Below are positions 10,006 through 47,579 of a stretch of DNA of 64,000 bases, one piece after another (within the stretch, counting starts at the first letter, position 1; every line of letters starts with the position of its first letter). Where the stretch lies: positions 67,456,001-67,520,000 of the forward strand of contig OZ076411.1 in assembly GCA_964187785.1 (NCBI GenBank), written 5' to 3'. Source of the stretch: Amphiscolops sp. MND2022. Taxonomy: Eukaryota. The position numbers and the translations under genes were made by a program. The notes beneath the pieces were generated by a model that did no database searches, had not been told where the DNA came from, and was given only the letters and a program-made list of their open reading frames with translations.

Positions 10006-10019
10006 TAGAACTCGTTTTT

Positions 10020-10036
10020 TGGCGACCACAGAGGGA
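10020..10036 (+). promoter_or_regulatory. Primer-binding site, tRNA-Arg(TCG)-like
   Basis: TGGCGACCACAGAGGGA is complementary to a tRNA 3' end (TCCCTCTGTGGTCG-CCA) resembling animal tRNA-Arg(TCG) ends as recalled. It lies 14 nt after the LTR. Confidence 0.7.
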
Positions 10037-15270: not shown

Positions 15271-18200
15271 CCATTACATGTGGAGCCAAGCAAGTCCAGA
15301 CCTGCTTGGAGCCAACTACATTTAGCCCTCAGGGACGAACACTTATATCAATCCATTTGATGCTAGCCGCAGAACAGCTGCGTCGGCCAACACTGACATT
15401 GGCCAAACTCTGGGTCGAACTGTCTATGATATACATTTACAAACGTGTGGAACTACCCCGCCCCAAAGAGTGGTATGCCCCAGGGGACACTCTTACGACC
15501 TATTCTCCCGTGCCAATCTGCGCCACTATGGAAGTCGTGGATGTGAAGTTTGAGGCCTGCGTGGTAGTAGACGTTTTCCCACCCGGAATATGCTTGGGCC
15601 CACAAGAACTCAAGTGTTAGAATATCAATCACCAGGAGCCAACCGGTGAAGCACGGATAGACGAGCGTGCGTCACTCGTCGTTTCCTTGGTTGTGCCCCA
15701 GGCGGCACCCATTCCTCTACGAGGACTTGTCGACACTGGCTTTGGTAAGTCCATCTTGACCTTTTCAGCCTTCAATCGTGTGGCCTCGCAGACTGGCACC
15801 GTGTTGAAGCCGTACCGCATTGATTTGTACGCCGCCAATGGCACGACCATTAAAACCTTTGGGCTGGAAGAGCAGATCCGCTTCCAATTGGGAGGCAATG
15901 AATTGGAAACTAATTTCGTCGTGGTAGACGAGGCCCTGGGAGTGGAAGACTTCCTCTTGGGTCGTAACTCCCTCCGAGCATACCAAGTGCTCGTGGACCC
16001 AACTTCGATGAAGATTGTGGTCCGAGCGCCAGTGAAGCCTGTTTGGCATCATGCACATACACAGGTAGGTGATGCTTCTTTAGCTACTCCTGTCGCTTTA
16101 GACAGCGACTTGATTCTCCAACCTTTTGAACAAGCAGTCGTCAAGGCTAAGCTCACCACCAATGAACTTAAACCGTGGATATTACAAAATGTAGCATTGA
16201 ATGCAGCAATCGCCGATGCATCGCTGCACAACGTAGTGTTTTTAGAAGACAGCATTGCCACTGTCAGTGAAACAGGCCACGTTTTTGTCAGCGTGATGAA
16301 CCCGACGAGTAACCCTCAGCGGATGCAGAAAGGAACCCGGCTGGGCAGTTTAGTCCCGGTGTCGTTGGTCTATCAGGCCATTCCGCAAAGGACCCAAAAT
16401 CAGCAAGCCCAGGTTCAACAAACTGAGGCCACCCATGACCAATTTGCGTTTGTGAATAAAATCTATGAAGAAATGAATTATACTACTGATTTGCAATTAC
16501 CTTCTTCATCTGAATTTGAGTTTTTGTCTTCAACAGATCCAACGAAAGCAGGCCTTTCAGAGCGTGAAATACGCAAGCGTACGGACTCTGGACTCCTGGC
16601 TCCCGTACAGGGAGCAGAGTCACAGCTTAAGACGGTCCGAGACCTATGGGGTTCCAAGGCTAGCATTTCGCTTGAAAACATCTTAACCGAGTTTGATGAC
16701 TTGTTCATGAAGCACAAGGCTGACATTGGTCGATGCACCATAGCCAAACATCCAGTCGAGGTGGAGCCAAGAGCAGTGCCCCAACGCGAAGGCGCAAGAC
16801 GCATGTCCCCTGAAAAGGCAGAACGTGCCAACCAGGAAGTACGCAATCTGCTCGCACTGGGTATGATTCAGCCTTCCTTGTCACCATGGGCAAGCCGGAT
16901 CGTCATGGTAAAGAAAAAGAACGGCGAGTTACGCTTTTGTTCTGTCTTCCGCCCACTGAATGAAGTTACCGTTAAAGATGCGTATCCACTGCCTCGCATC
17001 GATGAAAGCCTCGCTAGGCTGGGCAAGGCCAAGATCTACACTAGCATTGACTTGGCTTAGATTTTCTGACAAATTCCTGTCCGGAAGGCAGATCGTCAAA
17101 AAACCGCCTTTGCCTGCAAACTAGGACTGTTCGAATGGCGACGTATGCCTTTTGGCATGTGCAACGCCTCTGCCACCTTCCAAAGAGCGATAGCACGAGC
17201 GCTACGCAAGATCGTGAATCGGGAAGGCAGCATGGTAATGGCCTACATTGACGACATTGTCATTGCCACCGAAACCGTGGAAGACCACATGGTACGTCTC
17301 CGCGAAGTCTTTGAATGCTTGCGCGAAGCGGGTTTCAAAATGCGAGTTGCCAAGTGCGACTTCAAGAAATCCGAGATCAAGTACCTAGGTCACGTCGTAT
17401 CTGCGGAGGGCGTGAGGCCTGATCCCAAAGCTGTCGCAAAGTTACGCGACTGGGAAATTCCCCGCAACAAAACGGAAGTGCAGAGCTTCTTAGGCTTCGC
17501 CAATTACTATCGCGAATTTATTCCTTGGCACGCCAAGCTGGTAGCCCCTTTGCATGCCATCACTGGCACAAGGGCCACCTTCGCTTGGGGATCAGAACAG
17601 CAATTAGCCTTCAACGAGGTAAAGAAAGCACTCATTGACGCAACTGCCCTCGCGCAACCAGACTCCGAAGGCGAATTCGGGTTGGACATTGATGCCAGCG
17701 CCGTGGCTATCTCGTGGATACTTCATCAGTGGCAAGGCCCACCTGGAGAAAGACGTTTACGCCCAATTGTCTACGGAAGTAAAAAAAAACTCACAGCCAC
17801 GCGAGCCAAGTATGGAGCGCCGCAGCTAGAAATGTACGCGGCGTACCACTTCATCGTAAAGAACCACAGCTACCTATGCCCGCGAAAGTTCACGCTGAGA
17901 GTGGACACTCAGGCGCTATCATGGTTGAAAACGTACTCAACTGATCAAGCCCTCATTGGTAGATGGATCATGGCACTAGAAAAGTACCACTTCCTGTGTC
18001 GAACATCGACTTCGAACACAACATCGCAATGCCGATGGCCTATCCAAACGAACCAACGACTATCGATGGAGAAAACAACAGCTCGAAAAACTGCCTTCAG
18101 TCGCAGAACGATGGAGTTTTCTCTCCCAAGATGAATTCGAGCGTCTTCCCACCGCGCCATGGTTTGACTTGCAGGGCCGGGTAATCCCCAACCATCCTGA

Positions 18201-21200
18201 GCTACCACAGCACTCGAAAAACTTGCAACCAAACCCTCCCAACTCGGTTCAGCGCATAATTCGTCGCACGCAACGCATTCACCGGCGAAATAAACAGCAG
18301 GAGGCCCTGCAGGCACCTCTGCCTCCACAGCCACCTCCCATTCTACACGCTCACGAAGACTTCTACCACGACTACCCAAAAGACTGGATAGATGTTACCG
18401 AAGAAGCACGAGATAACTACTTACTGCCCACACACGTGACCAATGTTGCTTTACGCACCACCTATGAATTGACCAATACTGATGGAGCAACGCTGCAAAG
18501 TGCCCCCGCTCATGTTAAGCAGGTAGCAATGGCCATTCGCAGCGTGAGCACAGAGCTACACGAACATGCCCACACCGTCCACGGCATCAAGGACCTGGTG
18601 CTAGCGCAAAACAGAGATGTCCACGTCCTTGCACTCAAAAAGTTGGTCAACGGTGAATGCACTGACCAAGACATATTCCCTGAAGATGTACGTGCGTTTG
18701 CTCGTAACTACTTCAAACAAAAGAAGGAGATACTATTCCTGAACTCAAAACGTGTGCTTTGCGTGAAGTATCCACCACAACAGCGTCCACTGCATGAGCG
18801 ACCGTGCATGATAGTAATGCCTCAATTATATCAGCAGGAGATCCTTTTTCGTGCGCACGATGTCAAGGGTCGTCAAAGCATTACTAAAGTTGTGGCACGA
18901 ATTCAAGAACGCCGTACCTGGCTTGGTATTTGCCGCACAGTGGGCGAAAACGTCAGCCAATGCCTCAAATGCCAACAGGTTCGAGACAAGCCTGGCGATG
19001 TTCGGTTCCACCTCAAGAACATTCAGAGCGGGTACTCCATTGAGTTAGTGCAGTATGATCACATGAAGCTGTGCCCATCTGATGAGGGCCACACCGGAAT
19101 CCTAGCGATCATAGACCACTTCTCAAAATTTGATGAAGCTGTACCATGTAGTTATGAAGAATACGACGCAATCACCACCTCTCGCTTGCTGTTGCAGAAA
19201 TGGTTTGCACGTCACGGCACACCTACACGTATGCAGTCGGACATTGCTCCGAACCTAACTGCAGAGGTCTCCAATGAATTCATGAAGGCCTCTCAGGTTA
19301 CTAAAGTGACCTCCACTGCTGGTCGAACGCCCAGATCGTACCTTGCTTACACTGCTGCGTGTGTTTTGTTCACGTCGGATGCGTGACTGGGATCAGCATC
19401 TCGATGAAGTGCTCGGTGCTTACAATTCCACACGCCACGCTACAACGGGGTTCTCACCCTACATGTTGACTGGGGCACCGAAAAAGCGATACCCCTCACG
19501 TACTTGTACCCTGAGTTCGCCACTTAAGCTTTTCCCACGCACGATGCGTATGTAGACCACGTGCTGGCGCGTCAACAGGAAATTCACGACCTGGTGCGCA
19601 GGAACACTCACCAAGCTCAACAGCGTCAAAAACTTAAACATGACCGTGCGATTCAGCCAAAGCCTATCAGAAGGGCGACTTGGTCTGGGTTTTTTGTCGA
19701 TATGTTCCCCAAAAGGGATCACCTAAACTGATGCGCGCTTGGCGCGGCCCACACCATGTTGTACACACGTTACAGGATGGACGTGTTTACATCCTTGACA
19801 CAGGGCAAAAGGTCCACTTTGAACGCCTAAAGCCTCACAATAGTGGCCCGCTAGAATTTGCCGCCACCCCTCTTGATACCGGTGACATCGCCGTCGTCAT
19901 GGACCCAGAGCCTGAACGCTCTGTAGAACCCATAGACGATGATTGTTCAAAACCTTCATATGAGTCTGAACAAATGCTTTCAGAGGCCTCGAATGCTTCA
20001 CTAAGTTCCCGCAAGCGCCACTGGATGGATACCAGGTTGCGCACCAAGCTGCGTGCGGGCGAAACCCGGCCACATTACCAGCAATTCAATTATTCCAGGT
20101 CCGAAACAGACAATGAATCGTCGGGGGCGATGCTTCCCATTCCCATCCTTTCACCACAAAAGGTGGAAACCCACCTACCTCTGTTTCCAATAGACAACCC
20201 TATGGCACCTGATTCCTTATCAGATGTCTCAATATTGAGTTGTCTCCCACAATTGTTCTCTGATCATGAGCCTATGCGCTCACCTTCACCACACGTTTCG
20301 CAGTCAGACAATACTCCGGAGCTATCCCTCACCGGTACCCCTGCTCCGTTGCTGACTCAACCCTCTCTCACTGACTACCTCAGCAATTATCCCCTTTAGC
20401 CAAATTAAGCCAAAGTCTCTCCTGAAGCCAGTTCTTGTCCATCATTACCCTCAATGAACATGGCCCCGGCAGTATTGCCAACACTCCACCGCTCCTTCTT
20501 TCAAAAGGGGGACGGGGAGACCGCGAAAAAAGACACGGGTGCCTCAACAGCGGAAAACTCAGGGCAAAACAACGTCCAAGGCGCAGGTACCCAAACCGAA
20601 CGTCCAGACGGGATCTCAGAACAGATACCAACTGAGGCGAAAACGGCAGCCCAGATATAAATGCGGCACGTGCGGCCTACACGAATGCGTGTGCGTGCTA
20701 GCAGTGAATGAGAACCGGGACGTTCCCATTGAAGCCCCCGAGGGACGATATCACGCCAAGTTAATCCGTCAATTTGTCGTCCCAGCGGAGAAGACCTTTA
20801 CTGGAAAAGGAACGAACTGAGAAATATCCATCCGAATTGATCTTGCAACAAATTGCAGTACCAAGTGTTGCAAAGGCACCATGCCCCCGGTTCAAGGAAC
20901 GGACCAGTAATGGCAAAGGCTTTGAGTTCACGTTAGCCACCGTGATACCCCCAGTACCTCCCAAAATTGTGTTTGGACCGTTCAACTTTGAGCGAGAGCC
21001 TGTCCAAATGGCTAGGTGTATCACTACTGACTTGTTGCTTGACCGATTTGGAGTGGAAGTAGAATCGGGTGGTGTCTACAGTCCCGCCCCGTACTGGTGG
21101 CTGTTGGTGACTGCTTCAAGCGTCGATGCACTAGTGAACCCAAAACATCTACTGTTATGCTTGGAAAGCCTGAGGACTTCCACAACGGAAAACCTGATCC

Positions 21201-22021
21201 TATGCTTCCACCTAATAGACTGGTATCGAGGCAAGGTGAAATTCCGTTGGGGGTTGAAGGTTATCATCACATGCTTCATCAACTATCCGCGAATTCGTCT
21301 ATTGGACGAATGGACCCACACGTTTGAAGAACCCCTGCAAGTCATGGCAGCGGTGAGCACGCTAGACACATGGGTTCGAGCGAATGTAGATAACCAAGCA
21401 CTACCACGTTCCGTATGGCAGGACCTATCCGCAATACAAGGTCGCATCCCACGTGTGTGCAAACCTTCCGACAATGACCCTGGTCGAGAAATATTTTATC
21501 CAGGTAGTTTGCGTCCCAACATGGTGGAATACATTTCCTAAAACACCACTGACTTCTTGCAAGCCGAAAGGCATATAGCCCTGCCATGTCCGGCAGACTT
21601 GGAAACAAGTTCCGCGGCGCTGCGCTACGTGTTACGGGAATGTGGCAAGGAACACGTATTCTCACTACGTCCGCAAGTGGGGGAAATACTCACCCTAACC
21701 CCCACGATAACAAACAAGCCTTCTCAGACAATACACCTGCTGATTACACGCGCGAATCAGTGTGCACAACTGATAGCAGATGACTATCTGCTATGCCTGA
21801 GAAAATTGCTAGCATGGCTGGAAGACAGAGGAGTCTCCCAGGTCCACTTTCCCATACTGGACCCAGAAAGGCCGGTATACTTTTTGGCCAACCTATATCG
21901 AGTGATAATGGACTTGTTTGTGGACACGAACATCCACGTAGTTCTACATAATTGCGTGTATGTGTCCATACTAGGCATCGAAGTAGGTGTTAAACTACCT
22001 TGTTGCCATCTCCCTGGCTGA
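15270..22021 (+). pseudogene. pol: Gypsy pol: protease, dUTPase-like remnant, RT, RNase H, integrase with GPY/F motif, long C-terminal extension; multiple stops and frameshifts
   Basis: LVDTG...FLLGRN (PR); SVMNPTSNPQRMQKGTRLG; SPWAS, KDAYPLPRID, MPFG, YIDD (RT); DIDAS, YGAPQLEM (RH); HD...CLKC, QYDH, MQSD, VER (INT); WRGPH (GPY/F). Confidence 0.92.
20960..21960 (+). other. Two tandem TARG1/OARD1 (Poa1p-like) macrodomain-like units at the end of the Gypsy pol region
   Basis: Unit 2 (HIALPCPADLETSSAAL...GEILTL...TIHLLITR...CLRKLLAWLEDRGVSQVHFPIL...IMDLFVDTNIHVVLH) parallels TARG1 as recalled. Unit 1 (WLLVTASS...LLCLESLR...FHLIDWYRGKVKFRWGLKVIITCF...IRL) is similar. ORFs 20774 and 21557 share a frame and are separated by one TAA. 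Confidence 0.7.
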
Positions 22022-22561
22022 AATCTGCTGTGAACCACGGTCACTCAGACGGCTTCCTTGTGCCTAACACACTTTATTTATTGTTAAACACTTTACTTAA
22101 CCCTAACGAAGGACGCTTTGAGCGTTCTCTTAATTAATCTATCATAACTTGTAATAATGTTTTTCATTAAGGAGTTCTCTTATGGAACCGGTTTTAATAG
22201 CGCATCACTCAACCATCACCACGGGTTTAATGAGTATTCATTTTGAGAACCATGATAAGATGGCTTATCATCATACGGCCCCTGCAGCGATGCCTGCCTC
22301 AGCCCTACCTAATCAGAACGCTGCTCGAGCGCAGCGTTCCAACTAAGTGCAGTATATCAAAGGAAAGGCTATGCAATGGCATTTCGTCAGCAGCCGTAGC
22401 TGGGGTCGCAGCCCTCCTGGCTCAGTTAGAAACTCTACCTATTTTGGCCGTGTCGATAGTGGCTGACGTGGCAGGGTACAAACGTACCATGACCATGTCG
22501 CAGCGGGGTATGGGATGGATATGACCTGACTCATCCCTTTCTGGACGATCGGTCTACTGTA

Positions 22562-25500
22562 GTGAGAGGCCCCAGCCTACAAACAGCTATGGAGCAAGAG
22601 GCCACTTTGCGAATCCCTATTGCCAATGTGCCAATGCCACAGCCCTTGCCACCAGCACACCTGGTGATCCAACCTCAACAACAACCACTCGCACAGCAAA
22701 CGACACAGTCGCTGTATCTACCAGACGCACAGCCCGTGGCACATCCTCCAACCCAGATGGCACCTTATGCTAGTGCTCCACCGCCCATTCCCCGCACATG
22801 GTCCTTAGCACAACACCTCTACTGGAGCCCGAGGGCTCCAGCCCAATGTCCAGCGCCAGAGTGCAATATGTGCAATCCATCTGCGCCACCCTCGGCTCGT
22901 CACATTGTTGTCGCACCTGATATGTCGCACAGGACCCCTAGCGAGCAAGTTGTGATACAAGCTCTCCAAGCGGTATCGAATTACCCAGAATTCAGAGACA
23001 TTGTGGAGACAGTATCCAGGCAGATGCCAGGCTTGCAGAACCTTCTAGGAGCCACAGGACAGCCTGAGGGCTGACTGGTCACAAGGGGAAATCAAGGTCC
23101 AAGCACCTGTCCCTCTACTCCTGGTACCAGCACAACAAGACAGCGGGCTCCTTCACCTATTTCATGGTTGTCACTTGTTTCTGATGAGGAACTTGGCCGC
23201 AAAAAAGCCTCGCCGCATGAATTAACTCGATCGACCAACAACAACGACAGCCCCACGAGCCGTCCACTTCCGGTCAAAACGAACAATATGTTGCGCTCGG
23301 GTGGTAATTCAAGAGCCACCAAAAGTAGACTATCGTGGAACCCCAGAACCTCAAATGGCCATGAGTGAGGTAATGGAGCGGTATGCCCAAGCCCCGCCTC
23401 AAAGCAGGATAGCGCCGATGGCTCGGCACCCTCAGGCTCCTCCTCTACCACGAAATCTGGAAAGTCTACAGGACCACGGTATTTCCCACAGTCGGACACT
23501 GTGTCGGAAACCGTGGTAACAAGAGATGCCAATGGCATCTGGCAGGTCGCCCCTCGGTTGAACGATCAGCAGTTCCGAGACCACCAAAAAGTGCCTCCAT
23601 CCAGCGCCAGTCAAACTCAACTGCGGAAACTTTCAACCATTGCACATCTTTCACGAACTCTGCGCGCCTCAGATACGGACATCTTCGAGCCAGCATGGGA
23701 GCAAAGAGTAGTTCGACAGTTGACTACAGCCCATGACAACTATCTACGGCCGATGCAAAATAACCTGAATGCGCAATGCAATGCCAGATACTCGCTGCAG
23801 CCAGGTGAGACTTGGGAAACCCATAGTCAATACTCCAGGTGCCTGGAGGCCTTGAAGCCAATTTCAAAGGAACCCATCTAACGCGTGCGTTACTGCGTGA
23901 TGGTTGGTTCAACGGTCCCATGCGACCTTCCATTAGACAACATTATCCCTGATGTGTTAGTCGTGACGATGCCTATATCACGGCTACCCGAGATGGCAGA
24001 AGTAGCCATCGCGATGTTCTCACCTGAGTTAGAAGGTCCTCAGAAAGAGCCACCTCCCCGGCTAATCATCTTTGCCAATCTGATTGACCATATGGCCTGC
24101 GAAGGCCTACTAGAGGACTTGCCGCGTATACTGCGCGGAATGTCCACCCACGAAGCAGCAAGTAACGAAGTTGCTGGAGTATTACACCAAATAGCAACTG
24201 CAATGGAGCGCACAGGTAAGTTGCTCTGCGCTCGTCTGAGAGTGCCAGCATTATTCGTTTCTCCTCCTGGGAAGCTGTACTGGGGAGGAATGTTCCAACG
24301 GTTCGTATACAGGCTGATCGAGATCTGTAGTGCCGCCGCATTGATTTCTACTTATGCGCGCCCAATTTGCGCGTTGGAAAGACGGACTTGCGCCCTGCTG
24401 CACTATAAGCGCATGCATACCTGGCAACAATTTCACGTCTGTTGCAGCCTGTAGAACGTGGAGGCAATGCCCAACTGACCTGGGATGATGCGACCTACTA
24501 CGACCATGGAATGCGTCTAGGCACGCTGACGTTTGATGAGGCAGGAAATCGAATTCTCCCAGAAGCCAGAAGAGAGGGGCGTGAAAACATGCGCCGATAC
24601 AATTGGCTGGTGCCCGATGCCCACCCCAACACAGTCAAAGCAGATCTAGCAGCGGTCTGGGACCGGATTTGCAGATGGCCACTCAACAGTGAAGTGGAGC
24701 GAACAATCCCTCAGATTCAGTTCGCTGACAACACAGATATCATCAAGATGTTGCTGGGCTTGCGGCTCATCGTGGCTCACGAAGCCGTGACTCTAGACCA
24801 GCTAGTATGAGCACGCGAAGTCACGTACGGTGACTGGTATCATGACCGCATGACCACCGTCACATTGGAAATGGCAGCCAGAACGCTGTCGGTGTCTTTT
24901 CCAGAGTTGAAGACAAGTTTTGGCTTAGGATGGCACCTGGAATTCATGGCGGATGAATTCTGTCTAACCGACGAACAGCTGCAGAAACTCACCGATGCCT
25001 TGAAAGGAACTACGGTAAACGAGGTATTAGCCCTTGCGTTAGCCTTGGGACCCACAAAGTTTGTGGCTGGCCCCCTGGCCATGATCGTAGACCTAGTCAC
25101 CGCTGGTTGGGTCCTGGAGTTCTATATATACCTGGTCCGGGCCCAAGGAAAATTGACCTTCATGCTTGCATGTGGAGAAGTGCTCTTTTTGCAGAACGGG
25201 CACAGCTACACTGAGCAGCTATTCCGGATGAGAGCGTCAGTACAACACTGGCTCTACTCTACACTGATCTATGCATCGGGACTGTTCGTAGTAGTAGACC
25301 AAGCTCAACCCCTACGTGACTCGGACGCGCAGCTGCCTCGTGAAAATCCCGGCTTCCCTATGCCGCAGCAGATATCCAACCTAACGTTGGCAGAAGAAGA
25401 TCTGGTACCAGTAGTTGCCCCCGTCTTGATTCCTATCTTCGGACCCCTGAGCCTACTGCGTTATCCCACCAAGCCCGTGTCCATGGCGGCGCAAGTCGCC

Positions 25501-26591
25501 ACCGTACCCATATTTACTTACCTTCAAGAAGGTCATCCTAAGAATTATGAACAAGCAATCAGAGAGACACTGAGCATCGAGGTATCTCAAGCGTACACCA
25601 CCATCAAAACAGAGCAACAAGCGGAAGAAAACATGATGGGTGTTGTCCGCGCCCGTTCTCGAAAAGCTACTGTCTTGCCACGGGAATACGGCCCGGTTAA
25701 CTGGTATAACGCTCCGGTTGATCTCAACTGGCATCCATTCAGGTTCCCCTGGTCCGCGGACTTTGTCAAGAAGATAATCAACGCGAGTTTGCGGCTATGC
25801 CCGAATGTCTGTCCGGACTACAAATTCAAAATTTTTCAGGTACCCAACCGTTATTGGAAAGAGCCAGTGGGATACCCCCGCGCTCGTCCCATCAGGCGTG
25901 GCAAAGAGCACCTAGACCACCAGGTACGGCACTTGGATGTTGCCAACATCCCCAATGGATATGCGTGGCGGCACAAATACGCGACCGCAGCCTGTCACGG
26001 CGAATGGCCCCCATCCAATACGAACCTGCCTGGCGCCCTCAAGGATGTATGACCATGTCTGGGGACATGCCCCTGGCGCTGCTGGACACGGTAAACCAAG
26101 TCCTAGGCACAGAAATGCGTGCCGAACGGGATGAAGGGTGCCTCAACCTCGGGGTAAGTAAATTCGAAGTGTGGAAAAAGGCCTGTACGCTCTGGAGGCA
26201 AGCCGGATGGGTCTCCAAACGCGTTGCCCTTGCAGCCAGTCATCGAGCTGAGGAAGAGCGTGCAGCACGATACGCTCTCCAAGTGTCTCAAACTGCTGCT
26301 GCCCCCACCATGGCAATGTCACTGGAACAAACGCCCACAGTAGACGCCACACAAGCAGATGAAGAAGTTACAGAAGACGATACAGCTATGCCTGTGACCC
26401 CTAGTCCCTCTGGTGAGCATGCTGCAGAGCTCACGCCTAACGTGGAGTTGGCTGACCCCATCGGTGAACTCACCATCGACACCGATGCTGAGACTGTAGT
26501 GCCCTCACCCGCCAGACAAGTGTCCGTGAGCGATGCCTCATCTCCGCGAGAGAACTCTCCTCGAAGCAGGAACAAATCAGCAATTCAATGA
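22562..26591 (+). pseudogene. Gypsy extra 3' ORF (~1300 aa when rejoined): Pro/Gln-rich N-terminus, SGNH-fold-like domain, hydrophobic helical region, acidic tail
   Basis: Chain of same-strand overlapping or abutting ORFs 22562-23074, 23301-23881, 23885-24454, 24442-24810, 24850-26052, 25797-26591, lying between the pol stop and the PPT inside the LTR pair. Confidence 0.7.
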
Positions 26592-27366
26592 TCTCACATT
26601 CCAACTTGCCAAAACGTCAGTGAGCCCGAGGGCTCACAAATTGAATCAATGAAGCTAGGCCTTCTCAAAACTTCCATGGCCTTATTACGGTGCTGCCTTG
26701 AAACGGTGCAATTTTAGTTAATCGTTTGTAGTTAGATTATTTGATTTGATTCTACGCCTTGGGTGTAAGTTCATTGAGTGCATCTGCCTCTCGTGCCAAT
26801 ACAAATTAACAAAGCTCTTCAAAAAAAGGAACAAGCAAACACTGTTTTTGCTCATCACCTCTAGCGGTATCCAAGAAAGAAATCTTGGTGCGAAAGCACA
26901 GCGAAGTCATAAAAGATCTTTTAAACTAGATTGTCACTCTTTAGTTGAGTCTTGTGCGCTCTATCAACTGTCTATCTTCTGTGTGGAGCTCATACGCTCC
27001 TGAAAAAAAATCATTTTTAAGCAAGAAAACTGTATGAAACGAATCTTTGCCAAATTGGAGAAAAAGACATTTTAGATGGCACTTGCCGCAAAAGGCAAGC
27101 CTTGCTTTAGTCATCACAAGTGTTAAAAATGGCTTAAGCTGCCTGAAAAATCCTAGTTCTCGAGCCGGTGCTACGAACGTCTTCATTTTTTTGTAAAAGT
27201 ATTAGGTTTTGTAGTAAAATTGCAAAAGGATCCAAAAGGCGACGTCTTCAAGATGGCAGTCCTATGCAACGGCATTCTGGTTTCAAGATGTATACACAGC
27301 ATGGGCGGTATCCTGATTCCAGACGAGGATCCCCGATGATTGCCAGGGACGACAAGCCAGGAGCCC

Positions 27367-27376
27367 AGGAAGTGGA
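27367..27376 (+). promoter_or_regulatory. Polypurine tract of the Gypsy element
   Basis: AGGAAGTGGA immediately precedes the TGTGAC start of the 3' LTR. Confidence 0.6.
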
Positions 27377-28451
27377 TGTGACGGCATCCTGTGATCGACA
27401 GAGTCTTTCGAAATTTTGACGATTTTCTGAAAAATTCGTTCAAAAGTGACGTGGCCCTCAAACATGATTTCACGTGGTACCTGCCTGCAAAAATCATAGA
27501 GAGAAGAACAAGCAGACCGCGCGAGGCGGAAAAAAGCGAGCGAACCGACAGAGAAGCAGGAAAACGTGTACGAAACCGTAAAACTATAGCCCATGCGCTA
27601 TTTCCCACGGTGCTCATCACAGGTTGTGCCTAGCCAGAATGTCGGAGTATTTGCAATGTCCGGACCCAGGGTTGTGCCAAACCCGAGTACCAGTGCCATG
27701 CCACCTAAACCCGATACGCCGAACTGGATTTTAACTCTTCCTTGATGTATTTACCGATTTGTTTGATGAATTCTTGTTCAATTCAAGAGCTACTCGTGTT
27801 AATGTCATTTACGTTAGATTCCCTTCTGGATCGTTCAATTCAGTTTTATGCAATTTAGCCCCTTTTTTACAGGCTGTCTAAGCGGTGGTTATGAAAGAAA
27901 AAAGCATAATGCCCGTTATTCTCAGCAATTACACACTGGAACAGGTTAGAAAGCGGGTGGGCGGAAGTAGGTCGAAGGAACGGGATCGAAAATCAGAGTT
28001 AGACCTCAGGTCGACATACCAAATTTTTGAATGGGATCGAAACAACTCGGATCGAAATTTTAATAAGGTAGTCAGATATGTTCACATACCCCTAGTGCCC
28101 TGAATGTAGGAGCGAAACGACGTGCCATATGGCCATGCCTCAATGTTGCTACTTGGCGAAGGGAGCGAAGCGACCGAGCCATACAACAAATACGATAAAA
28201 TTCGACCGCATTCCATTCGATCCCCGCAGTTCGATCAAAAGGTTCGACCTCTGTCCTTTCGACCAGAAATTTCGACCTATTTACAGCCACCCTCAGAAAG
28301 CATCCTTAGGAACGGTTCCCCCTCCACGGGATCGGCTTTCCTTAGGAGGACAAAATGGACTGGAGTTATGGTGATTGGTCCCGAATCTTAACCCATGACG
28401 TCAGTTCCTCCATCCTGTGTAGCGAACAAACGCTAAGCGCTTTTCATTTTA
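27377..28451 (+). repeat. Gypsy 3' LTR (contains MITE insertion)
   Basis: Begins TGTGACGGC, colinear with 9277-10005, followed by ATATA. Confidence 0.88.
27955..28292. mobile_element. 338-bp MITE with 9-bp TSD inserted in the 3' LTR
   Basis: Imperfect TIRs gggtgggcggaagtaggtcgaa / ttcgacctatttacagccaccc. TSD ttagaaagc (27946-27954) / tcagaaagc (28293-28301). The 5' LTR holds the empty site (aggtcagaaagcatcc). Confidence 0.9.
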
Positions 28452-37381: not shown

Positions 37382-38264
37382 GTTAGAAGGAGAATTTATT
37401 TCTCCAAGAACAAGATACATACAGTTATCAGCATTATATAGAAGAGATTTGGAGAGGATTGGTAACGAGATCAACAGATCTGCTTCTCAACCAGTTCTGG
37501 AAGTACTTAAAATACCTGAAAGTTCAACATGGACTATTCAACGACAAAAGATTCTAAGTTGAGAACAAAATTTTACCAAAAATGAATTTTGCCGCCCAAA
37601 AAAGCTCAAAAATAAAATCAGTGATTACAGCAGTGAGGCAGTTTTTCATTCGAGACCTTACAAAAATTAAGGTTTATAAAACATGCATTTAGATCTGTGA
37701 ATCGCATTGAAACCGGTTCGAAATTCTCGAACAAATCGGAGCTCGTACGCATTCTGATCATATTTTTGGATCCCCTTCCAGCCACTGATGACCGACCAGG
37801 TTGGTCCATGTTTAAATATGGGGATATGATATTTATGTGTTGCGCCATTAAGTTGAAAACATGTGTGGTTTACTGATCAAGAAAAATGCTATTGAGACCC
37901 AAGAGATGAAAGTCGTCAACATTCAGCTTCAGACAAAAGTTTGGTAATTATTGTTAAATTTGTAAAACCGAATCTGTCAAACTTTATGCTATAGTTTCAT
38001 CATTTTTCGTATAGAAAAACTGCCTGTTTGAAAGCGGTGCTTTTAAACGTTATTTTCACTCTCCATTCTCCTTTGTTGCTCTATTTCCAATGCTTTTTAG
38101 GAATCAGAAAAATTTTCGACAACTTTATGCAATCGTACCTTTTTTCTCCCGACCTTGCCATGAAATTTTTCAATTTTCTCAAAAACTGTCCATACAATTT
38201 TTTATAAAATTTAACAGTCTTTCTACGCCTGTGTGCGCAATGGCATCAAAGTCGTATGAGTGGG

Positions 38265-38571
38265 TGTTGAAGCACAACTAAAGCAAGCAGATGAAAGCTA
38301 GACATTCAAATCTCAAAGTATTCATGCTGACTAACACTCACATGCAAAAATGTATACTTCATTGATTTCGTAATTTGTTCATACTTTGTTCTCATTTCCC
38401 ACAATTTCTGTCACTTTAGTAAAAATCAGTCGAGTTAAAACTTTAACTTGCTCTCCCATTTTTCAACAAATTAGATTGATTCTAATTTAAACATTCAACA
38501 AATTAGATTGACTCTAATTTACAAATCGCAACAAATTAGATTGATTCTAATTTACAACTCACGGAACAACA
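38265..38571 (+). repeat. BEL 5' LTR (307 bp)
   Basis: TGTTGAAG...GAACAACA; only 3 mismatches to the 3' LTR seen by eye. Confidence 0.96.
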
Positions 38572-38574
38572 TTT

Positions 38575-38595
38575 TGGTACCGTATCGACCCGGGA
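38575..38595 (+). promoter_or_regulatory. BEL primer-binding site (tRNA-Phe/His-like, imperfect)
   Basis: TGGTACCGTATCGACCCGGGA, 3 nt after the LTR. tRNA identity uncertain. Confidence 0.6.
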
Positions 38596-38605
38596 AAAGC
38601 CAGAA

Positions 38606-41600
38606 TTGTTACTCACAATGTCTGCAAAGTACGCCGACAAAACACTTGACCAATTGAAGCGGTCAAGATCTGCAATGCTTGGTGTGATCACCAAACTCAG
38701 CAACGAAGCACAAGCTCTTTTGAAAAAGGAGAAAAGTAATCTGCTGGACGAAGACATTGACTTGCTGAATTACTGGAAGAAAAAGTTTGAAACCAAGGTT
38801 GAAGAAATTGCTCATCTAAATGCTGCTCTTGTCGAAGTTACACCAGACAATGATGCCGACATGGAAAGGGAGCTTGAAGATGCAGAAAATGCCGAACGAA
38901 AAAGTGGTACCCTTCTTGAAGCAGTCAGTCGCATTCTGGAACAATTTGAAGAAACTGATGCATCACTGGCACCAATTCAAGAACCAACAAATGCCACATC
39001 CAATAGTCACAGCAGCCATATCAAGATGCCCAAATTCGACCTGCCGAAATTCAATGGTGAATACAAGAAGTGGGTTCCGTTCTATGAACAGTTTATGGCC
39101 TCAGTTGATAATAACCCCAGTATTCCAGCAATTCAAAAATTCAATTATCTGAAAGCCTCACTAACCGACGAAGCTCTTCAATTAGTTGCTCACTTGCCGT
39201 TGTCAAGCTCGAATTATCCAATTGCTTTCAAGTCGCTTGTTGACCGCTATAACAATCCTAGATTGATTCTCAACAGTCCTTTGGATGTTATCTTCGATTT
39301 GAAGTCAATGAAGGGCGATTCGGCATCTGAGTTACGCAAATTGTTCGTCACTTTTGAAGAAAATTTGATGGCGATCAAGGCTCTAGAACTAGAGACAATT
39401 TAGAAGACTTCATTTGGGTACGAATGATTGCAGAAAGGTTGGATCAAGCTTCGAGAGCTCTTTGGGAAAACGACTACCCTGGTACCAAAACACAAACCCT
39501 GACGCAGTTACGAGAGTTTATTGGCAGAAGAGCTCAAGCTCTTGAATCAGCCACGAAATCAACTACCAAGGCTTCAGAATGTCCACATCTTAAATGTAAT
39601 TCTCAAAAGAAATCTCAACCTACTCAAAACTACAAGGCTAGTGTTGAAAAATGTCCTTGTTGTTCAGAAAGTCATAGAATTTATTCTTGCAAGAAATTCA
39701 CTAACATGAGTCCTAAGGACCGCAAAAATCTCGTTTGGACGTCGAAATTATGCTTTAATTGTCTGAACTCTGGTCACAGAACTAAGGAATGCAAGTCAAA
39801 GCATACCTGTAAAACATGCCATTCAAAACACAACTCGTTATTACACTTACCGGACGCAACAAAAGGAGCTGTTTCTGGCTCACTTACCACAAATCAGGCG
39901 ACTGCTGGAATTGCCTCTGGCATCGTTCCTACCGCAATGGTTCCCGTTGAAGATGATTCTTCAAAAATCACCATGTGTCGAGCCATGATCGACACCGGAT
40001 CACAGATCAGTTTGATCTCAGAGTCCGCAGTGCAGCGGATGAATTTGAAACGTCATAAGCAGACACTTACCATTAATGGAATTGGAAATGTTTCCAAAAC
40101 TTACCGCTCCGGCAGTGTTAGCCTGCGATTGAAACCAAGTTCTGGTCATAGTGTCATCACAGTTAATGCATATGTCTTACCCAGCCTTACCCAAGTTCTA
40201 CCTGAACGCGAATTCAGCATCGCCAAATGTTTCCAATTGAGGTCAGTGGATTTAGCAGACCCTGAATTCAATAAACCCAGAAAAGTGGAAATGATCTTGG
40301 GCTCTGATGTTGCAGAGCAAATTTTCCTTGACGGAAAATTTCAAGAAGACAATGGTCTTCATTTCAGAAACACCATATTTGGCTGGACTGCATCTGGTGT
40401 TACAAGAGACCATCAATCAAATATCGTCACCACCTCACTCTGCATCACCAACTCCTTCAACTTGAAACAATTTTGGGAGCTTGAGGAAGTCCCTGAGGCA
40501 AAAAGGTACAGTGATGAAGAAATTGCTTGTGAGAAGCATTTCAAGGAAACTACCTACATCGAAGATAACAGATTTCATGTTGGTATGCCTTTCAAACCTG
40601 ACAGCTCTCCATTGGGAGATACTTTCACTCAAGCGAAACGTCGTTTTCTAAATCTTGAAAAACGTCTAGATTCAAATCCTAATCTTAAAAAAGGATACAC
40701 AGAATTCATTCACGAATTCATCGATCTCAATCATCTGGAACCTGTACCTGACAATGAAATTGCAAAACCTGATCATCAATTGAACTTCTTGCCGCATCAT
40801 TGTGTTCACAAGGAGGATTCAACTACCACAAAGTTGCGTGTGGTATTCGACGGATCTGCCAAATCCAGTAATGGCAACTCACTCAATGGTTCTCTCATGG
40901 TAGGGCCAACAGTACAGCAAGATTTGTTTTCAATTCTTATTCGTTTTCGGTTGCATAAAGTTGCTCTATCGGGAGATATCGCAAAAATGTACCGACAAAT
41001 TGCATTAGACCCAGCTGCAAAAGATTTTCAGACTTTTATGGAGGGATTCAAACACAGACTTCATCAAGCAGTTTCGAATGACTCGTGTTACCTACGGAAT
41101 TGCTTCCTCGGCATTTCATTCAACTCGAAGTGTGGTAGAAGTCGCCAATCTGTGTAAAGACCAAGTTCTCGCTCAATCAATAAAAAACGATTTCTATGTT
41201 GATGACTATTTATCTGGTGCCGAATCAACTGAAGATGCAAAAACGAAAGTAGATGAAATTTGCGCAGTTCTGAACACTTATGGATTTGAGCTACGGAAAT
41301 GGGCGTCTAGTCATCATGAAATCACCTTGTCTTTGCCAGAAAATCTACGAGAAAGCACCAACCAAGAAAAATTCATGGACAACAATTACAAAATAAAAAC
41401 GCTGGGTGTGTCATGGAAACCCAACTCAGATCACTTCGGTTTCTACTCAAATTTGACAATTCAAGGGAATGTGACTAAACGACAGTTACTCTCAGAGACA
41501 GCGAAGTTGTTCGACCCAGTTGGGTGGCTTTCTCCCATTGTCATCAGATTTAAGGTTTTACTTCAAAAACTCTGGGTACAAGGTATTGAATGGGACCAAC

Positions 41601-43819
41601 TTGTATCTAAAGAAATTCAGAATGAATGGGAACAAATAAAAGATGACTTGCCCAATTTGGCAGAACTCAAGCTACAGCGATGTATCTCTCCTCAAGGGAA
41701 AATCGCGAATGTTCAACTTCATTTGTTTACAGATGCCTCTGAAATGGCATATGCCGCTGTCATCTACGCACGGATAACAGATATTGACAGGCATATTGTC
41801 TCGAAACTCGTCGCAAGCAAGACACGGGTTGCACCCATCAAAACAGTCTCTTTGCCTCGATTGGAACTTTGTGCTGCCCATCTTGGAATCAAGCTACTTG
41901 TCAAAATCAAGAAAATCTTTGCACTCACAAATCTACCAAGCCCAACTATCTATGGATGGACTGATTCCACGATAGTTCTCCAATGGCTTTCGCAGCTACC
42001 ACGAACATGGACCTGTTTCGTCGCCAATAGTGTCCGAAATTCAGCAAACTCTTCCTCGAGAAAATTGGTATCACGTCAAGTCCAACTTGAACCCGGCAGA
42101 CTGTGCATCAAGAGGGATGATGGTCCAAGACTTACTCAAGCATGACCTCTGGTGGTTCGGTCCCAATTGGTTATTGCATCCAGAGGACACTTGGCCTCAA
42201 TTATCTTCAAAAATCGATGATGAAATGCGAAAAATTGTTCAAACAGAACAAAAGCATAAAATCAACACTACTACAGTCACTGCCTCTCAAGTCGCGGAGC
42301 CTCTATTTGACATTAAACAATACAGCACTCTCAGCAAAGTCTTTCGTGTAGCAACAAACGTGCATTTAGCTATTGACTTACTTCAAAGGGTCAATAATCA
42401 TCTGAGTCTTACTCCCTCAAGACTCGCAAAAGCGAAGGATCTCATCATTTCACTTCACCAACAAGAGTTCTTCACAGAAGATTTCTTTCGTTTGAAAGCT
42501 GGGCAGGAAGTAAGCAGAAAAAGCAAGCTTCTCAACTTATGTCCTTTCTATGATGGAGATACTGGCACAATCCGCGTTGGTGGTAGATTATCACAAAGTT
42601 CACTCGCCGAGTTTCAAAAATTTCCTCATCTCATTCACCCTGATTCTCATCTGGCAGTACTGATTTTACGGCATTTTCATGAAGCTACCCTTCATGGCGG
42701 GGGGCAGCTAACGCTCAACTCCAGCAGATCAGAATACTGGATAGTTCGAGGTAAAACTGTTGCTAACAAATTTATCCGGAAATGTGTCAAATGCAGTCGA
42801 TTCTCTAGTGAAATTCCAGCTCAACTTATGGCTGGCTTACCTTCCGAGAGAGTTACGCCTACCAAACCTTTCGTTATTGTTGGTATTGATTTGGCAGGAC
42901 CTATTATCATCAAGCCAGACAACAAGACATGGATTGCAGTTTTCGTTTGCTTTTCCACAAAGGCTGTTCACATAGAATTAGTCACTGATTTGACAAAAGA
43001 TTCTTGCATCGCAGCTTTGAAACGATTCGTTGCAAGGCGTGGACTACCAGAAAAGATTTTCAGTGACAATGGTACCAATTTCATTGGAGCCAGAAATGAT
43101 ATTGCGAAAGTTCAAAGTCTTTTCAGTAAAGACACAAATGAAAATTCAATCAAAAATTGCATCAATAGTCGTGGAATTGAATGGATCACTATTCCACCTA
43201 GAGCTCCACACTTCGGTGGACTCTGGGAAGCAGCTATTAAGTCAATGAAACGACACTTGAGGCGTTGTGTGGGTACGCAAATCTTGACTCATGATGAATT
43301 GAACACTTTCGTTATTCAAATCGAAGGAATTCTAAATTCTAGACCTCTCACTGCAATGTCTGCTGACCCCAATGATTTACAGCCGCTCACTCCAGCTCAC
43401 TTCATACTGGGACGAGGGATGAACGATTTACTTTCGCTGACTGCAAGTGGAAGTGATGAAAACTTACATCTCAATGTCAGATTGAAGCTTCTGGAAAAAT
43501 TGAAATCTTTTGGAAGTCTTGGCATCGAGATTACTTGGCTACGCTAAAATTACGAAAACGATGGCTCACAAGCGGTCCAGAATTCGCAAAAGGTGATTTA
43601 GTTTTGATTGCTGAGGACAATCAACCTCCTTTGCACTGGAAAATGGCTCGTGTAATAGATCTTTTTTCTGGTAATGACGAGATAAATCGTGTTGCAAAAG
43701 TCAGAACAACCAGTGGAACCCTGATGCGGGCAATAGTCAAGCTTAGAAAGCTCCCCATAGATCCCCCGCAAGCTACATCAGGTCCTGACTTGGTCAGAGA
43801 TGCAACAACTCTAACTTAA
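38606..43819 (+). pseudogene. gag-pol: BEL/Pao gag-pol polyprotein, broken by four frameshifts
   Basis: KMPKFDLPKFNGEYKKW (gag); three Cys/His knuckles; AMIDTGSQ (PR); YVDDYL (RT); FTDASEMAY (RNase H); H...HGG...CVKC, GIDLAGP, SDNGTNF, GGLWE (INT); GDLVLIAED...WKMARV (C-terminal). Frame changes near 39390, 41030, 42030 and 43500. Confidence 0.96.
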
Positions 43820-43864
43820 AAGAAGTGAAGTACATCAGAGCAAAAATGGGGCATGTTATTCAGA

Positions 43865-44800
43865 CAACTTTTTCGGTCCCGAATTTTGTTGTTACATTAT
43901 ACAGACGCATGGACCACCTTAAATGACGCCCTAGCATTTCTGTGAAAATGTCTTGGGAGCCGAATTTTCGATTTCGGTCTCTATTTGAAGTTATAGTAAT
44001 TTGATGCGTCTTACCTCTATTTCGGAATACCGAAATACCTGATGTTTTTTCGGTCCCGAATTTTGTTGTTACATTATACAGACGCATGGACCACCTTAAA
44101 TGACGCCCTAGCATCTCTGTGAAAATGTCTTGGGAGCCGAATTTTCGATTTCGGTCTCTATTTGAAGTTATAGTAATTTGATGTGTCTCACCTCTATTTC
44201 GGAATACCGAAATACTTGATGTTTTTTCGGTCCCTAATTTTATTGGTACAGTTTACGGATATACGAACCTCGCTAAATGGCGCCCTGGCATCCCCGTGAA
44301 AGGTCCTAGGAAGCCGAATTTTCGATTTCGACTTACATCCAAAGTTATGTCCGTTTGACTTCAGGTTCACCCCAATATTTTACCTCAGAATTGACAATTA
44401 TTCACCTTATTTCGTTTCACCTGTTTACATTTGGTCTTTTCTAGGCCTTTCTGATTTCCTACTATCACCAGCTGTTTCATGGATCGAAATTAACAGCCAC
44501 TTACCCATTTGACTCAAGAAATTCAATCCTAATCAAACAAATTTCGTACTTTTAATGAAATTCGACATAAATCAACGGATGTTTTTCCGGTCCCGAATGA
44601 AGATCATGTACTTCCAGATGCTGGTTTTACGCTCAAAGGCTTCCTAAAAGCCCCCTGCAGAAAGTCTGTGAAGCCGAATGTTGAATTTTTGATTATAACT
44701 AAAGTTATCTCCATTTTGACCTGTATTACAACTGGTTTGGGATTCTGAAATATTCAATGTTTTTTTTTCGGTCCCGAATAACATTGAAAATTCTTCCAAC
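43865..44800 (+). repeat. ~177-180-bp tandem array inside the BEL 3' region
   Basis: cggtccc anchors at 43874, 44051, 44228, 44588 and 44768. Units 1-2 are near-identical; later units are diverged. Confidence 0.85.
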
Positions 44801-45382
44801 CGTATAGGTGGTCGCAATCGACGCCCAAGATTGCTGTCAACAACCTCCTGAGGCGGGATTTTTTATTTTCAAGTTATATTACAAGAAAATCTTACATACA
44901 GTTATCAAATTATCATTTGGAATCAGTCAACAGAAAAATAAATTCAAAGAACAGAAGAACTTCAACTCACCTTGGATTCTGCAGTTTGTTGCAGCTATAC
45001 AGGCTTCGGCGGAGCTTCGGCAGATCAAGCTCAGAGGCACCGACCAATGAAATTTATTTATCATCAAATGTAATATTGGATATTTTACTTATACAACCTA
45101 CCGAAATGTGGATGTTCGCATTTATATTTATCAGTAGCAGACAATCTCTATTGGTTTTATCATCATTCTCGAAATTATAGTTATTTCAAATCTCTCAATC
45201 CCCATAATCTAGCAGACGTGGCTTGCGGTCTAACTGGTTCATTATCAATTCATCATTATGGAATTTCAGTTCAACTCACTTCTTATGGAAATTCATACAT
45301 GCACTCGTGACTCATTCAAATGGTTGAAAAATCAAATGACTCATTCGATCATTTATTCTGTTCATATGGAAGTAACAAAATT

Positions 45383-46774
45383 TCACAGTTCGTCACGAGG
45401 CATGCACTCTTCAACTGCAGCAAGAGGAAGATCTAATTCTTCATCAGACGTAAACTCTAGAAGAGCTGGCGCCTCCGAAGAAGTTAGATCCCCCTTTTTT
45501 AGGTTAGCCAGCAAGCGATTTTTCTTTCTTCGGGACTTCGCTGACAGCTCCAATTTGGGAACTGGAAGGTGAGCTTCCAAATTGAAACCATAGTTAACGA
45601 AGGCCTCAAAGTGTTCCAGTACATCACTCCGAGAGAGGAAAGATCTAACAGACGTCTCAGTACGGGAAAGAGAAATTGCTGGATTCAGACTGACTTGAAC
45701 TTGAAACTTACGCCAGGCTGCCAGTGCAAGCTTCCAGTCCCTGACAGTCAGAAGTGACAACAACTTATGCTTTCCGTACCTCTTCAACCACTGTGAAATA
45801 TAGCCTCTTCCGCAACCCGTACTGAAACTGTTAAAAACAATGCTTGCTCGCCTAGTGTCGCGCAAATCCAGTCCTTCCCAACCATGCACAAGTGCCCATC
45901 GAGTAGAACCATCAGCAGCAAAAGCTCTACCCGTTAGAACACAATGCGCATAGCAAGCAGGCTGAATTAACACGTCACCTTCTTCAGCTAAGTGAAACCG
46001 CAAACCACGAATGTTTCTTTTGTTCTGCTTATGCGTTTTCGAACGTTCTGACTTTGCACCCATCAAGAGCTGATAAAAATGATCAAAGCTTTGAATGGAC
46101 ATAAGGAATCTGGAAGAGCCAATATTGGTAGCTACGATCCACAGCTTGCGGCCGGACGATAGCTTGGCAATACTCTCTCCCCCAGCTGGTTCAATATGTC
46201 CACATGTCATCCAAGGCCCCTTCGCTGCTAAAAGTGCCTTGGATCCAACTTTGATGTAGTCCGGAGCAAGACAATTGACAGCCGAGTCAGGCAACACAAA
46301 CGAGCACGTTCTGCTGCCCTCAAAACCCCGGTTGTCCCTTCCCTTGCTGCGACTTGTAACAGTGGCTCCTGCTGACTGCAAAAAGTCCGAGAACGCACAA
46401 GCACCCTTGTTCCAAAGTGACTTGACTCTGGGAGCCAAATCACAGAGACTGTCTGCTGCAGCGCCTCGAACCACCGTGGGGACAGTTGGAAATTTGATCC
46501 CCCAGCTGAAGATGGAGACCACCAACAGTGGAAGAATTCCCCTCTGTCGCCACGCCAATCCTCCACGCTGCTCCACTTCAGCGAACACCTCCTCAACACG
46601 ACTCTCTCCTGGGACTGTTGGAGGCACCTCCTCGTCGTCACTAACCTCCGCACCCGCGTCCACCGTTTCCTTTGGATTCATTGCAAAATCTGAAATCATT
46701 AAAGAATCTACCGATCCTTCAAGGCGGGCGGTATGTTGAAGCACAACTAAAGCAAGCAGATGAAAGCTAGACAT
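45383..46774 (-). CDS. JmjC-domain 2-oxoglutarate/Fe(II) dioxygenase-like protein encoded antisense inside the BEL element (463 aa from ATG 46774; 432 aa from ATG 46681)
   Basis: Uninterrupted ORF: PTVVRGA...KGPWMTCGHIEPAGGESIAKLSSGRKLWIVA...FHLAEEGDVLIQPACYAHCVLT. This gives T(-3), H, E(+2), K(+17) and a distal H(+84). Basic KSRRKKNR near the C-terminus; AATAAA on the minus strand at 45053-45058. Confidence 0.85.
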   Translation of the reverse strand: MSSFHLLALVVLQHTARLEGSVDSLMISDFAMNPKETVDAGAEVSDDEEVPPTVPGESRVEEVFAEVEQRGGLAWRQRGILPLLVVSIFSWGIKFPTVPTVVRGAAADSLCDLAPRVKSLWNKGACAFSDFLQSAGATVTSRSKGRDNRGFEGSRTCSFVLPDSAVNCLAPDYIKVGSKALLAAKGPWMTCGHIEPAGGESIAKLSSGRKLWIVATNIGSSRFLMSIQSFDHFYQLLMGAKSERSKTHKQNKRNIRGLRFHLAEEGDVLIQPACYAHCVLTGRAFAADGSTRWALVHGWEGLDLRDTRRASIVFNSFSTGCGRGYISQWLKRYGKHKLLSLLTVRDWKLALAAWRKFQVQVSLNPAISLSRTETSVRSFLSRSDVLEHFEAFVNYGFNLEAHLPVPKLELSAKSRRKKNRLLANLKKGDLTSSEAPALLEFTSDEELDLPLAAVEECMPRDEL

Positions 46775-47040
46775 TCAAATCTCAAACTATTCATGCTGAC
46801 TAACACTCACATGCAAAAATGTATTTTTCATTGATTTCGTAATTTGTTCATACTTTGTTCTCATTTCCCACAATTTCTGTCACTTTAGTAAAAATCAGTC
46901 GAGTTAAAACTTTAACTTGCTCTCCCATTTTTCAACAAATTAGATTGATTCTAATTTAAACATTCAACAAATTAGATTGACTCTAATTTACAAATCGCAA
47001 CAAATTAGATTGATTCTAATTTACAACTCACGGAACAACA
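46734..47040 (+). repeat. BEL 3' LTR (307 bp)
   Basis: Near-identical to 38265-38571, followed by TSD gtggg. Confidence 0.96.
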
Positions 47041-47579
47041 GTGGGATTTGAGAAACATAGCCAAAGTTAGCCCAAAAAAGGCCAAAAACAGTCATTTTAG
47101 ATTTTCATTTTGACCAAAACGATTTGAAAGAACTTTTATGGAGTCTTTCTACACTATAAAAGGGCTTAAGTGTCCAATTTCATCAGAATCGTGTGACTGG
47201 CATTCGAGCAAGTCGGAAGGAAAAAAATCTTAATTCTACCCCTTGATCACACATGCTGCTCTGGTTATTGTTTCAAATGTTGCTCATTTTCAATCCATTT
47301 CGGCTTTTGATTTAGCTAAGCTTTCCGACTTGCCCCCTCTTCAACAAGCGCTCAAACATTCGTTGTTTACCCTAAACTCGGTATTGCAGTACGCACTGTC
47401 CTCTTTGTAATTTCTGATAGAGAAGAAAGCGAAGAAGAGAAAAGAACACAGTATGATGTCTAAAACGTAGATCAGTACGGAGCAAATTGTAATTACTGTG
47501 TATTTATTCATCAACCTGCTAAAGTTTGAATCTCCTGTATTGATTCGACGATACTTCAATAATTTCAATGATTTTTCAG

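Follow-up and report, generated by a model that had tools for sequence, protein, structure and literature searches.

Retrotransposons are silenced by their hosts largely through histone methylation guided by small RNAs. The transposon counter-measures known to us are few, namely VANC and the proposed TET/JBP cargo, and none of them is an enzyme carried by a retrotransposon. The subject of this study is a minus-strand gene, encoding a predicted JmjC-type oxygenase, within a BEL/Pao long terminal repeat (LTR) retrotransposon of Amphiscolops sp. MND2022. The element (8.8 kb) occupies positions 38265-47040 of the window, which is the whole stretch of 64,000 nucleotides analyzed here (contig OZ076411.1, positions 67,456,001 to 67,520,000 of the forward strand) and to which all coordinates below refer. 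We consider it very probable that the gene encodes a JmjC oxygenase that is retained as selected cargo of the element; what the enzyme would do for the element is proposed more tentatively.

The closest precedent comes from fungi, in which DNA transposons (Kyakuja, Dileera, Zisupton, Plavaka, and some Helitrons) carry TET/JBP dioxygenase genes as cargo (PMC12730594). The latest survey of these genes found none carried by a retrotransposon; among other transposon-borne epigenetic factors it names VANC and captured SET-domain genes (PMC12730594). Like the window gene, the TET/JBP cargo encodes Fe(II)/2-oxoglutarate (2OG) dioxygenases, has moved between transposon lineages, and has been linked to the removal of silencing marks, in both cases as a proposal only. 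It differs in belonging to another fold subfamily, in acting on DNA bases, and in being restricted to fungal hosts and DNA-transposon carriers. For VANC of the Arabidopsis VANDAL (MuDR) transposons an anti-silencing function was shown experimentally (PMC5735166, PMC10398659). The likeness lies in an accessory protein, encoded by the element, that would counter the epigenetic silencing of its own family; VANC, however, is a sequence-specific DNA-binding protein without an oxygenase fold and belongs to a plant DNA transposon.

The position and the origin of the gene have parallels as well. HBZ of human T-cell leukemia virus type 1 (HTLV-1) is an antisense gene at the 3' end of a retroelement. 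Antisense open reading frames (ORFs) adjoining the 3' LTR have been described in plant Retand and other LTR retrotransposons (PMC11963269, PMC7264820). These share with the window gene a minus-strand location between pol or env and the 3' LTR and, presumably, transcription driven by that LTR, whereas their products are a bZIP regulator or proteins without known fold and not JmjC-class enzymes. In bdelloid rotifers, LTR retrotransposons contain enzymatic third ORFs (GDSL esterase, DEDDy exonuclease, dUTPase), which are shared across unrelated retroelement types (PMC5408684). These too are enzyme genes captured by animal LTR retrotransposons, but they run in the sense direction and represent other classes of enzyme, with no JmjC reported.

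An initial annotation of the window, made from the sequence alone, knew of no described BEL/Pao lineage with JmjC cargo, and full-text literature searches likewise returned no LTR retrotransposon with a JmjC gene. New here are thus the carrier (an LTR retrotransposon) and the enzyme class (JmjC), while accessory enzyme cargo with a proposed anti-silencing role was already known.

The antisense gene and the fold of its product

The gene forms a single exon between pol and the 3' LTR and is oriented tail to tail with pol. Its features are the following:

45383..46681, minus strand: antisense gene for the predicted JmjC-type oxygenase, 432 amino acids (aa) from M32, stop included (evidence from the ORF, alignment, fold, and the ratio of nonsynonymous to synonymous substitution rates, dN/dS)
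45944..46207, minus strand: catalytic core with T190 (46207-46205), H193 (46198-46196), E195 (46192-46190), K210 (46147-46145), and H277 (45946-45944), aligned to ceKDM7A and PHF8
45482..45508, minus strand: basic motif KSRRKKNRL, which reads RKKNRRLAN in diverged lineages and the consensus (alignment)
45352..45357, minus strand: AATAAA, candidate poly(A) signal of the antisense gene, 25 nt past the stop (sequence read)
46720..46733, plus strand: polypurine-tract region adjoining the 3' LTR, whose reverse complement encodes residues TARLE of the long ORF form (sequence read)

The initial annotation had described an uninterrupted minus-strand ORF of 432-463 aa at 45383..46774. Its coordinates, ATG start, and length of 463 aa agreed exactly with the ORF listing and the open frame held, but the 463-aa start did not. 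The ATG at 46774 sits 41 nt within the 3' LTR, as do about the first 13 codons. Read in reverse complement, the LTR terminus and the polypurine tract yield residues 12-22 of the long form, and the frame upstream of M32 is interrupted by a stop in the sister sublineage. The peptide of the TARLE region is also kept in a 52%-identical lineage, as is to be expected of a polypurine tract, which is a cis element. The ATG at 46774 was rejected as the true start on these grounds. The methionine common to all lineages is M32 (46681-46679), located 53 nt from the inner edge of the LTR, and since it is conserved in every lineage the likely product has 432 aa.

The translation contains the motifs WMTCGHIEPAGG, SSGRKLWIV, GDVLIQPACYAHCVLTGR, and KSRRKKNR. 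K210 lies at H193+17 and H277 at H193+84; the positions of the T/H/E/K/H motif residues, both spacings, and the coordinates of the histidine codons had been given correctly. The basic motif, a possible nuclear localization signal judging from its composition, is followed by an acidic S-D-E-E stretch. The AATAAA hexamer is kept at the same 25-nt distance in both sublineages although its surroundings diverge. The G+C content of the antisense gene (window 45400-46800) is 46-54%, compared with about 40% in gag-pol and the rest of the element and 31-37% in the LTR and flanks, and this higher value fits either a foreign origin or selection on the gene's own codon usage.

The claim that the product is a JmjC dioxygenase was borne out by fold prediction, weak profile matches, and residue conservation, and not by direct domain assignment. 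The Pfam search with the single window sequence gave no domain in the 432 aa and no match to JmjC or Cupin_8, the two families named for this purpose in the initial annotation, and a PDB search with an 11-member profile returned no match. An exhaustive profile search of 1.84 billion protein representatives (E<=0.001) retrieved 155 relatives, many of which were fragments. A 50-member alignment (17-50% identity) was the basis for the structural model and the profile. The AlphaFold2 model built on this alignment had a mean predicted local distance difference test score (pLDDT) of 89.8 and a predicted template modeling score (pTM) of 0.88; AlphaFold with the 11 close relatives only gave an unusable model (pLDDT 39.5). 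Foldseek comparison of the model with the PDB yielded 387 matches at E<0.001, and all 50 of those listed were JmjC enzymes (TYW5, FIH, PHF2, KDM7A, KDM5B). The fold search against the Swiss-Prot models and the ESM Atlas returned JmjC proteins only, and by protein-language-model features the JmjC clusters were matched at 0.96.

At the sequence level the 50-member profile, searched against 177,635 PDB sequences, matched only ceKDM7A (E 0.083) and PHF8 (E 0.3-0.4), both weakly. These alignments placed T190/H193/E195 on the T-x-x-H-x-D motif, G-x-K210 on the 2OG-binding lysine, and A-H277-C-V-L-T on the distal H-A-V-L-T of ceKDM7A/PHF8. Of the Pfam families, JmjC alone had more than two matching members in the set of 50 (5/50, best E 2.8e-4, all below the gathering score); neither the window protein nor any of the 50 relatives reached the gathering score of JmjC (PF02373) or Cupin_8. 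The gene family is divergent and is not captured by current profile libraries. In the model a double-stranded beta-helix barrel is followed by a helical region and by a flexible tail with the basic motif. An Fe(II) facial triad of the form H-x-D/E...H and 2OG contacts at H-3 (T/S) and H+17 (K) are present. On the basis of the model and the sequence matches, the protein is assigned to the JmjC structural superfamily, with a predicted complete Fe(II) triad (H193/E195/H277) and both predicted 2OG contacts (T190/K210).

The catalytic columns are kept in 89-98% of the members: T190 in 40/45 (T or S in 44/45), H193 in 44/45, E195 in 44/45 (plus one D), K210 in 46/48, and H277 in 49/50. Judged by these residues the active site is apparently competent. 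Their conservation also bears on a non-catalytic role, in which the protein, in the manner of Epe1, would attach to chromatin or to silencing factors and prevent heterochromatin assembly, either sterically or by recruiting activators. Epe1 is a JmjC anti-silencing factor of fission yeast for which a non-enzymatic function has been reported (PMC7192584). It is difficult to account for the retention of the metal triad and both 2OG contacts among 50 members (17-50% identity) unless the protein is catalytic, and we regard such a role without catalysis as improbable.

The carrier element, its copies and selection on the gene

A six-frame search of the 1.07-Gb genome gave at least 100 matches to the antisense ORF (35-100% identity). 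In each of the 23 copies that the LTR query could reach, an LTR of the same orientation directly adjoins the 5' end of the ORF. The genome also contains at least 12 relatives of the whole element that are near full length (94-100% identity). Both results uphold the earlier claim that the ORF travels with the element. The arrangement extends to diverged lineages. In the same genome, both a 52%-identical lineage (L023-L027) and a 46%-identical lineage (L028/L032) have the gene on the strand opposite to a BEL/Pao pol, tail to tail, and a metagenome contig shows the same layout, with the gene for a 48%-identical protein next to an intact Pao polyprotein of 1718 aa. On a metagenome contig, too, a 31%-identical relative meets a pol of 1744 aa tail to tail; this pol contains RVT_1, RT_RNaseH, Integrase_H2C2, and rve but no Pao domains, and by this domain set the neighbor is classified as a Gypsy-type element. 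In most contexts readable on contigs of sufficient length, the family thus stands beside retrotransposon genes, namely those of three BEL/Pao lineages and one Gypsy-type pol (P0017, P0039, P0058, P0120, and P0126, with short contigs or no DNA, were left out).

Two relatives have other surroundings. An intact 445-aa relative of 45% identity (L030, G000:C9:50193230-50197441, with L033) lacks a BEL/Pao or Gypsy pol, to a distance of 9 kb, on the side where one would be expected; a 325-aa RVT_1 fragment some 5 kb away is all that was found. The 37%-identical relative P0013 (L042, 9944-11077, on a 470-kb contig) is flanked by a pair of 5-kb direct repeats with 99% identity to each other, in which PIF1-helicase fragments occur. 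No pol is nearby, and these surroundings may represent a different kind of carrier or a tandem array. Within the window, the region 9277-28451 contained no JmjC relative according to the search of the own genome.

Between the window sublineage and the sister sublineage dN was 0.035 and dS 0.185, a ratio of 0.19, and the fixed differences comprised 25 nonsynonymous and 40 synonymous codons (binomial p of the synonymous excess 2.5e-13). The ORF is 93-94% identical to that of a sister copy, compared with 81-89% for the spacer on one side and 86-92% for the LTR on the other. These comparisons point to purifying selection on the antisense gene between element lineages, and the earlier expectation of a multicopy, retained gene with dN/dS below 1 is borne out. 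They have to be set against the reading of the gene as a neutral passenger, a captured host sequence copied along without benefit to the element. Inside a sublineage dN/dS is near or above 1, which would suit a passenger but is also what is expected from decay after insertion; likewise the ORF of the window copy is open although its pol is dead, possibly a matter of length alone. The ratio of 0.19 between sublineages with its p of 2.5e-13, the unchanged position of the gene in lineages as distant as 46% identity, its presence next to a Gypsy-type pol, and the better conservation of the ORF than of its flanks all speak against a passenger, which we consider very improbable; like the Epe1-like role, it is in poor agreement with the data.

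Two further candidates were rejected. A spurious open frame is ruled out by the at least 100 genome matches, the 155 library relatives, the dN/dS of 0.19, and the retention in several lineages. The position of the family below the Pfam JmjC threshold makes it unlikely that a canonical host JmjC gene was captured recently.

The remaining features of the carrier are listed here:

38260..38264, no strand: left copy of the target site duplication (TSD), GTGGG (sequence read; the same pentamer lies beyond the 3' LTR)
38265..38571, plus strand: 5' LTR, 307 nt, TG..CA (repeat search and exact comparison)
38575..38592, plus strand: putative primer-binding site with TGG start, 3 bases past the LTR (position and typical TGG)
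38606..43819, plus strand: gag-pol of BEL/Pao type, in five frames in the window copy (Pfam and tblastn)
43869..44399, no strand: 177-nt unit repeated three times in tandem, in the spacer that separates pol from the antisense gene (repeat search)
46734..47040, plus strand: 3' LTR, 307 nt, TG..CA (repeat search and sequence read)
46933-46958, 46965-46990, and 46998-47023, plus strand: three copies of a 26-nt palindromic motif in the 3' LTR (sequence read and repeat search)
47041..47045, no strand: right copy of the TSD, GTGGG (sequence read)

The repeat search of the window gave direct repeats of about 300 nt separated by 8469 nt, and by exact comparison the LTRs differ at 3 of 307 positions (54, 92, and 93). 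The element is young. The initial annotation had given the LTR differences and the TSD exactly. Its assignment to BEL/Pao was also right, as the internal region matched DUF1759 (gag), Asp_protease_2, Peptidase_A17 (the Pao signature), Integrase_H2C2, and rve; a Pao-type pol with DUF1759 gag occurs in the window copy and in an intact sister, together with TG..CA LTRs and a short TSD. The intactness claimed for the ORF stood, but that of the element did not, since the antisense gene is intact and the window element is not. Compared by tblastn with the uninterrupted 1718-aa BEL/Pao polyprotein of the metagenome contig, the window gag-pol has four frame changes, with breaks near 39403-39424, 41078-41157, 42030-42145, and about 43547. 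In a sister copy, located on a different chromosome, gag-pol is one ORF of 1740 aa with the full Pao domain set (Peptidase_A17, RT, integrase, DUF5641, and DUF1759 gag), and two further copies have one frame change each. The comparison of sister copies covered three regions of gag-pol and two flanks. Contigs of public DNA runs show small indels relative to the window at two of the breaks, and these two breaks are therefore not common to most copies. Despite its broken gag-pol the window copy can, as far as its open frame indicates, still supply the enzyme.

The public DNA-run contigs also connect the left flank to 47041 without the element. The flanks 47041-47125 and 38230-38259 belong to a very high-copy host repeat into which the element was inserted (summed contig depth more than 140,000 for the repeat and about 1,000 for the element), and many contigs link the left flank straight to the right flank, these being empty-site-like paralogues. 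The 26-nt LTR motifs, with a AATTAGATTGATTCTAATT-like internal palindrome, are spaced at 32-33 nt and recur at the corresponding position of the 5' LTR; transcription factors that drive sense or antisense transcription may bind to them. The tandem copies of the 177-nt unit are 100, 98, and 60% identical, and in the comparison with the sister copy, where much of this stretch is absent or altered, conservation is lowest and gaps are most frequent here.

Compared with one sister (G000:C12:57267113-57276800, L008+L035) the window element is a mosaic, with 98-99% identity in gag-pol, 86-92% in the LTRs, 81-89% in the spacer, and 93-94% in the antisense gene. The block of LTR, spacer, and JmjC gene accordingly has a history different from that of gag-pol, and by its identities it looks as if it had been swapped by recombination between co-packaged RNAs.

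A possible role against chromatin silencing

The predicted fold appears closest to the KDM2/KDM7 histone demethylases, with a narrow lead of about 1 Z unit in the structural comparison. The initial annotation had used JMJD6 as its comparison, and this enzyme was not the closest. The KDM2/KDM7 proteins (JHDM1, PHF2, PHF8, KIAA1718, ceKDM7A) are only 11-15% identical to the window protein and have PHD, CXXC, F-box, or LRR modules, whereas the window protein is a catalytic domain with a helical tail; they are host genes, and the window gene is encoded by a retrotransposon and lies below the Pfam JmjC threshold.

The alternative is an active protein or RNA hydroxylase (like JMJD5, JMJD6, FIH, JMJD7, or TYW5) that would modify a host factor or the Gag, integrase, or RNA of the element and thereby aid replication or disarm a restriction factor. 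The comparison with KDM2/KDM7 runs counter to it in three respects, as the top 21 entries by Z are all KDM2/KDM7/PHF, the only sequence-level matches of the family profile are KDM7A and PHF8, and the alignment to KDM2/KDM7 continues into the post-barrel helical region (up to model residues 365-407). We consider a hydroxylase unlikely, though still a serious competitor to the demethylase.

If the protein is a demethylase, the following chain of events can be proposed. As the gene is antisense, it would form part of the 3' untranslated region of the genomic RNA and be copied in each cycle of reverse transcription, that is, at every retrotransposition. Its own transcript would be driven by a promoter situated either within the 3' LTR or on its border, a location to which the geometry points, because M32 is only 53 nt from the LTR, and would end at the AATAAA, as for HBZ in HTLV-1. 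The protein would enter the nucleus by means of the conserved basic C-terminal motif and act as a KDM2/KDM7-like lysine demethylase without reader modules, removing repressive or transcription-coupled histone methylation, and this demethylation would delay or reverse the chromatin silencing of element copies.

Several observations weigh against this proposal. The lead of KDM2/KDM7 over JMJD5, TYW5, JMJD6, and FIH is a tie by the tool's own measure, the identity to any solved JmjC structure is 10-15%, and the single-sequence searches of Pfam and the PDB were blank. The Pfam search of the 432 aa found no PHD, CXXC, F-box, or Tudor module, so that, with the targeting modules of the cellular KDM2/7 enzymes lacking, the route of the protein to element chromatin is unexplained. 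The public sequencing runs with element sequence number four, all from one study and none recorded as RNA; within 41500-47300 their short contigs give even coverage of the entire element, the pattern expected from repeat DNA. An antisense transcript would moreover pair with the genomic RNA and could feed small-RNA silencing. Taking both sides together, we put the whole chain, in which the element uses a reader-less KDM2/KDM7-like demethylase against chromatin silencing, at somewhat less than an even chance. The more general statement, that animal LTR retrotransposons (BEL/Pao, with relatives beside a Gypsy-type pol) encode such a demethylase antisense from the 3' LTR and erase the silencing methylation of the host, is possible but has to be held with more reserve.

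If the proposal is true, the gene would represent the first enzymatic, chromatin-level counter-defense known in a retrotransposon. A selected JmjC oxygenase in BEL/Pao would be a direct and testable candidate for an element-encoded eraser in animals, and if the eraser role is true, a chromatin-level arms race would become accessible to experiment. Even if the substrate is a protein or RNA, LTR retrotransposons would gain an enzymatic accessory function not described before, and the JmjC enzymes a family that has so far gone unannotated. For the annotation of animal genomes the finding shows that such ORFs are transposon genes and not host JmjC paralogues.

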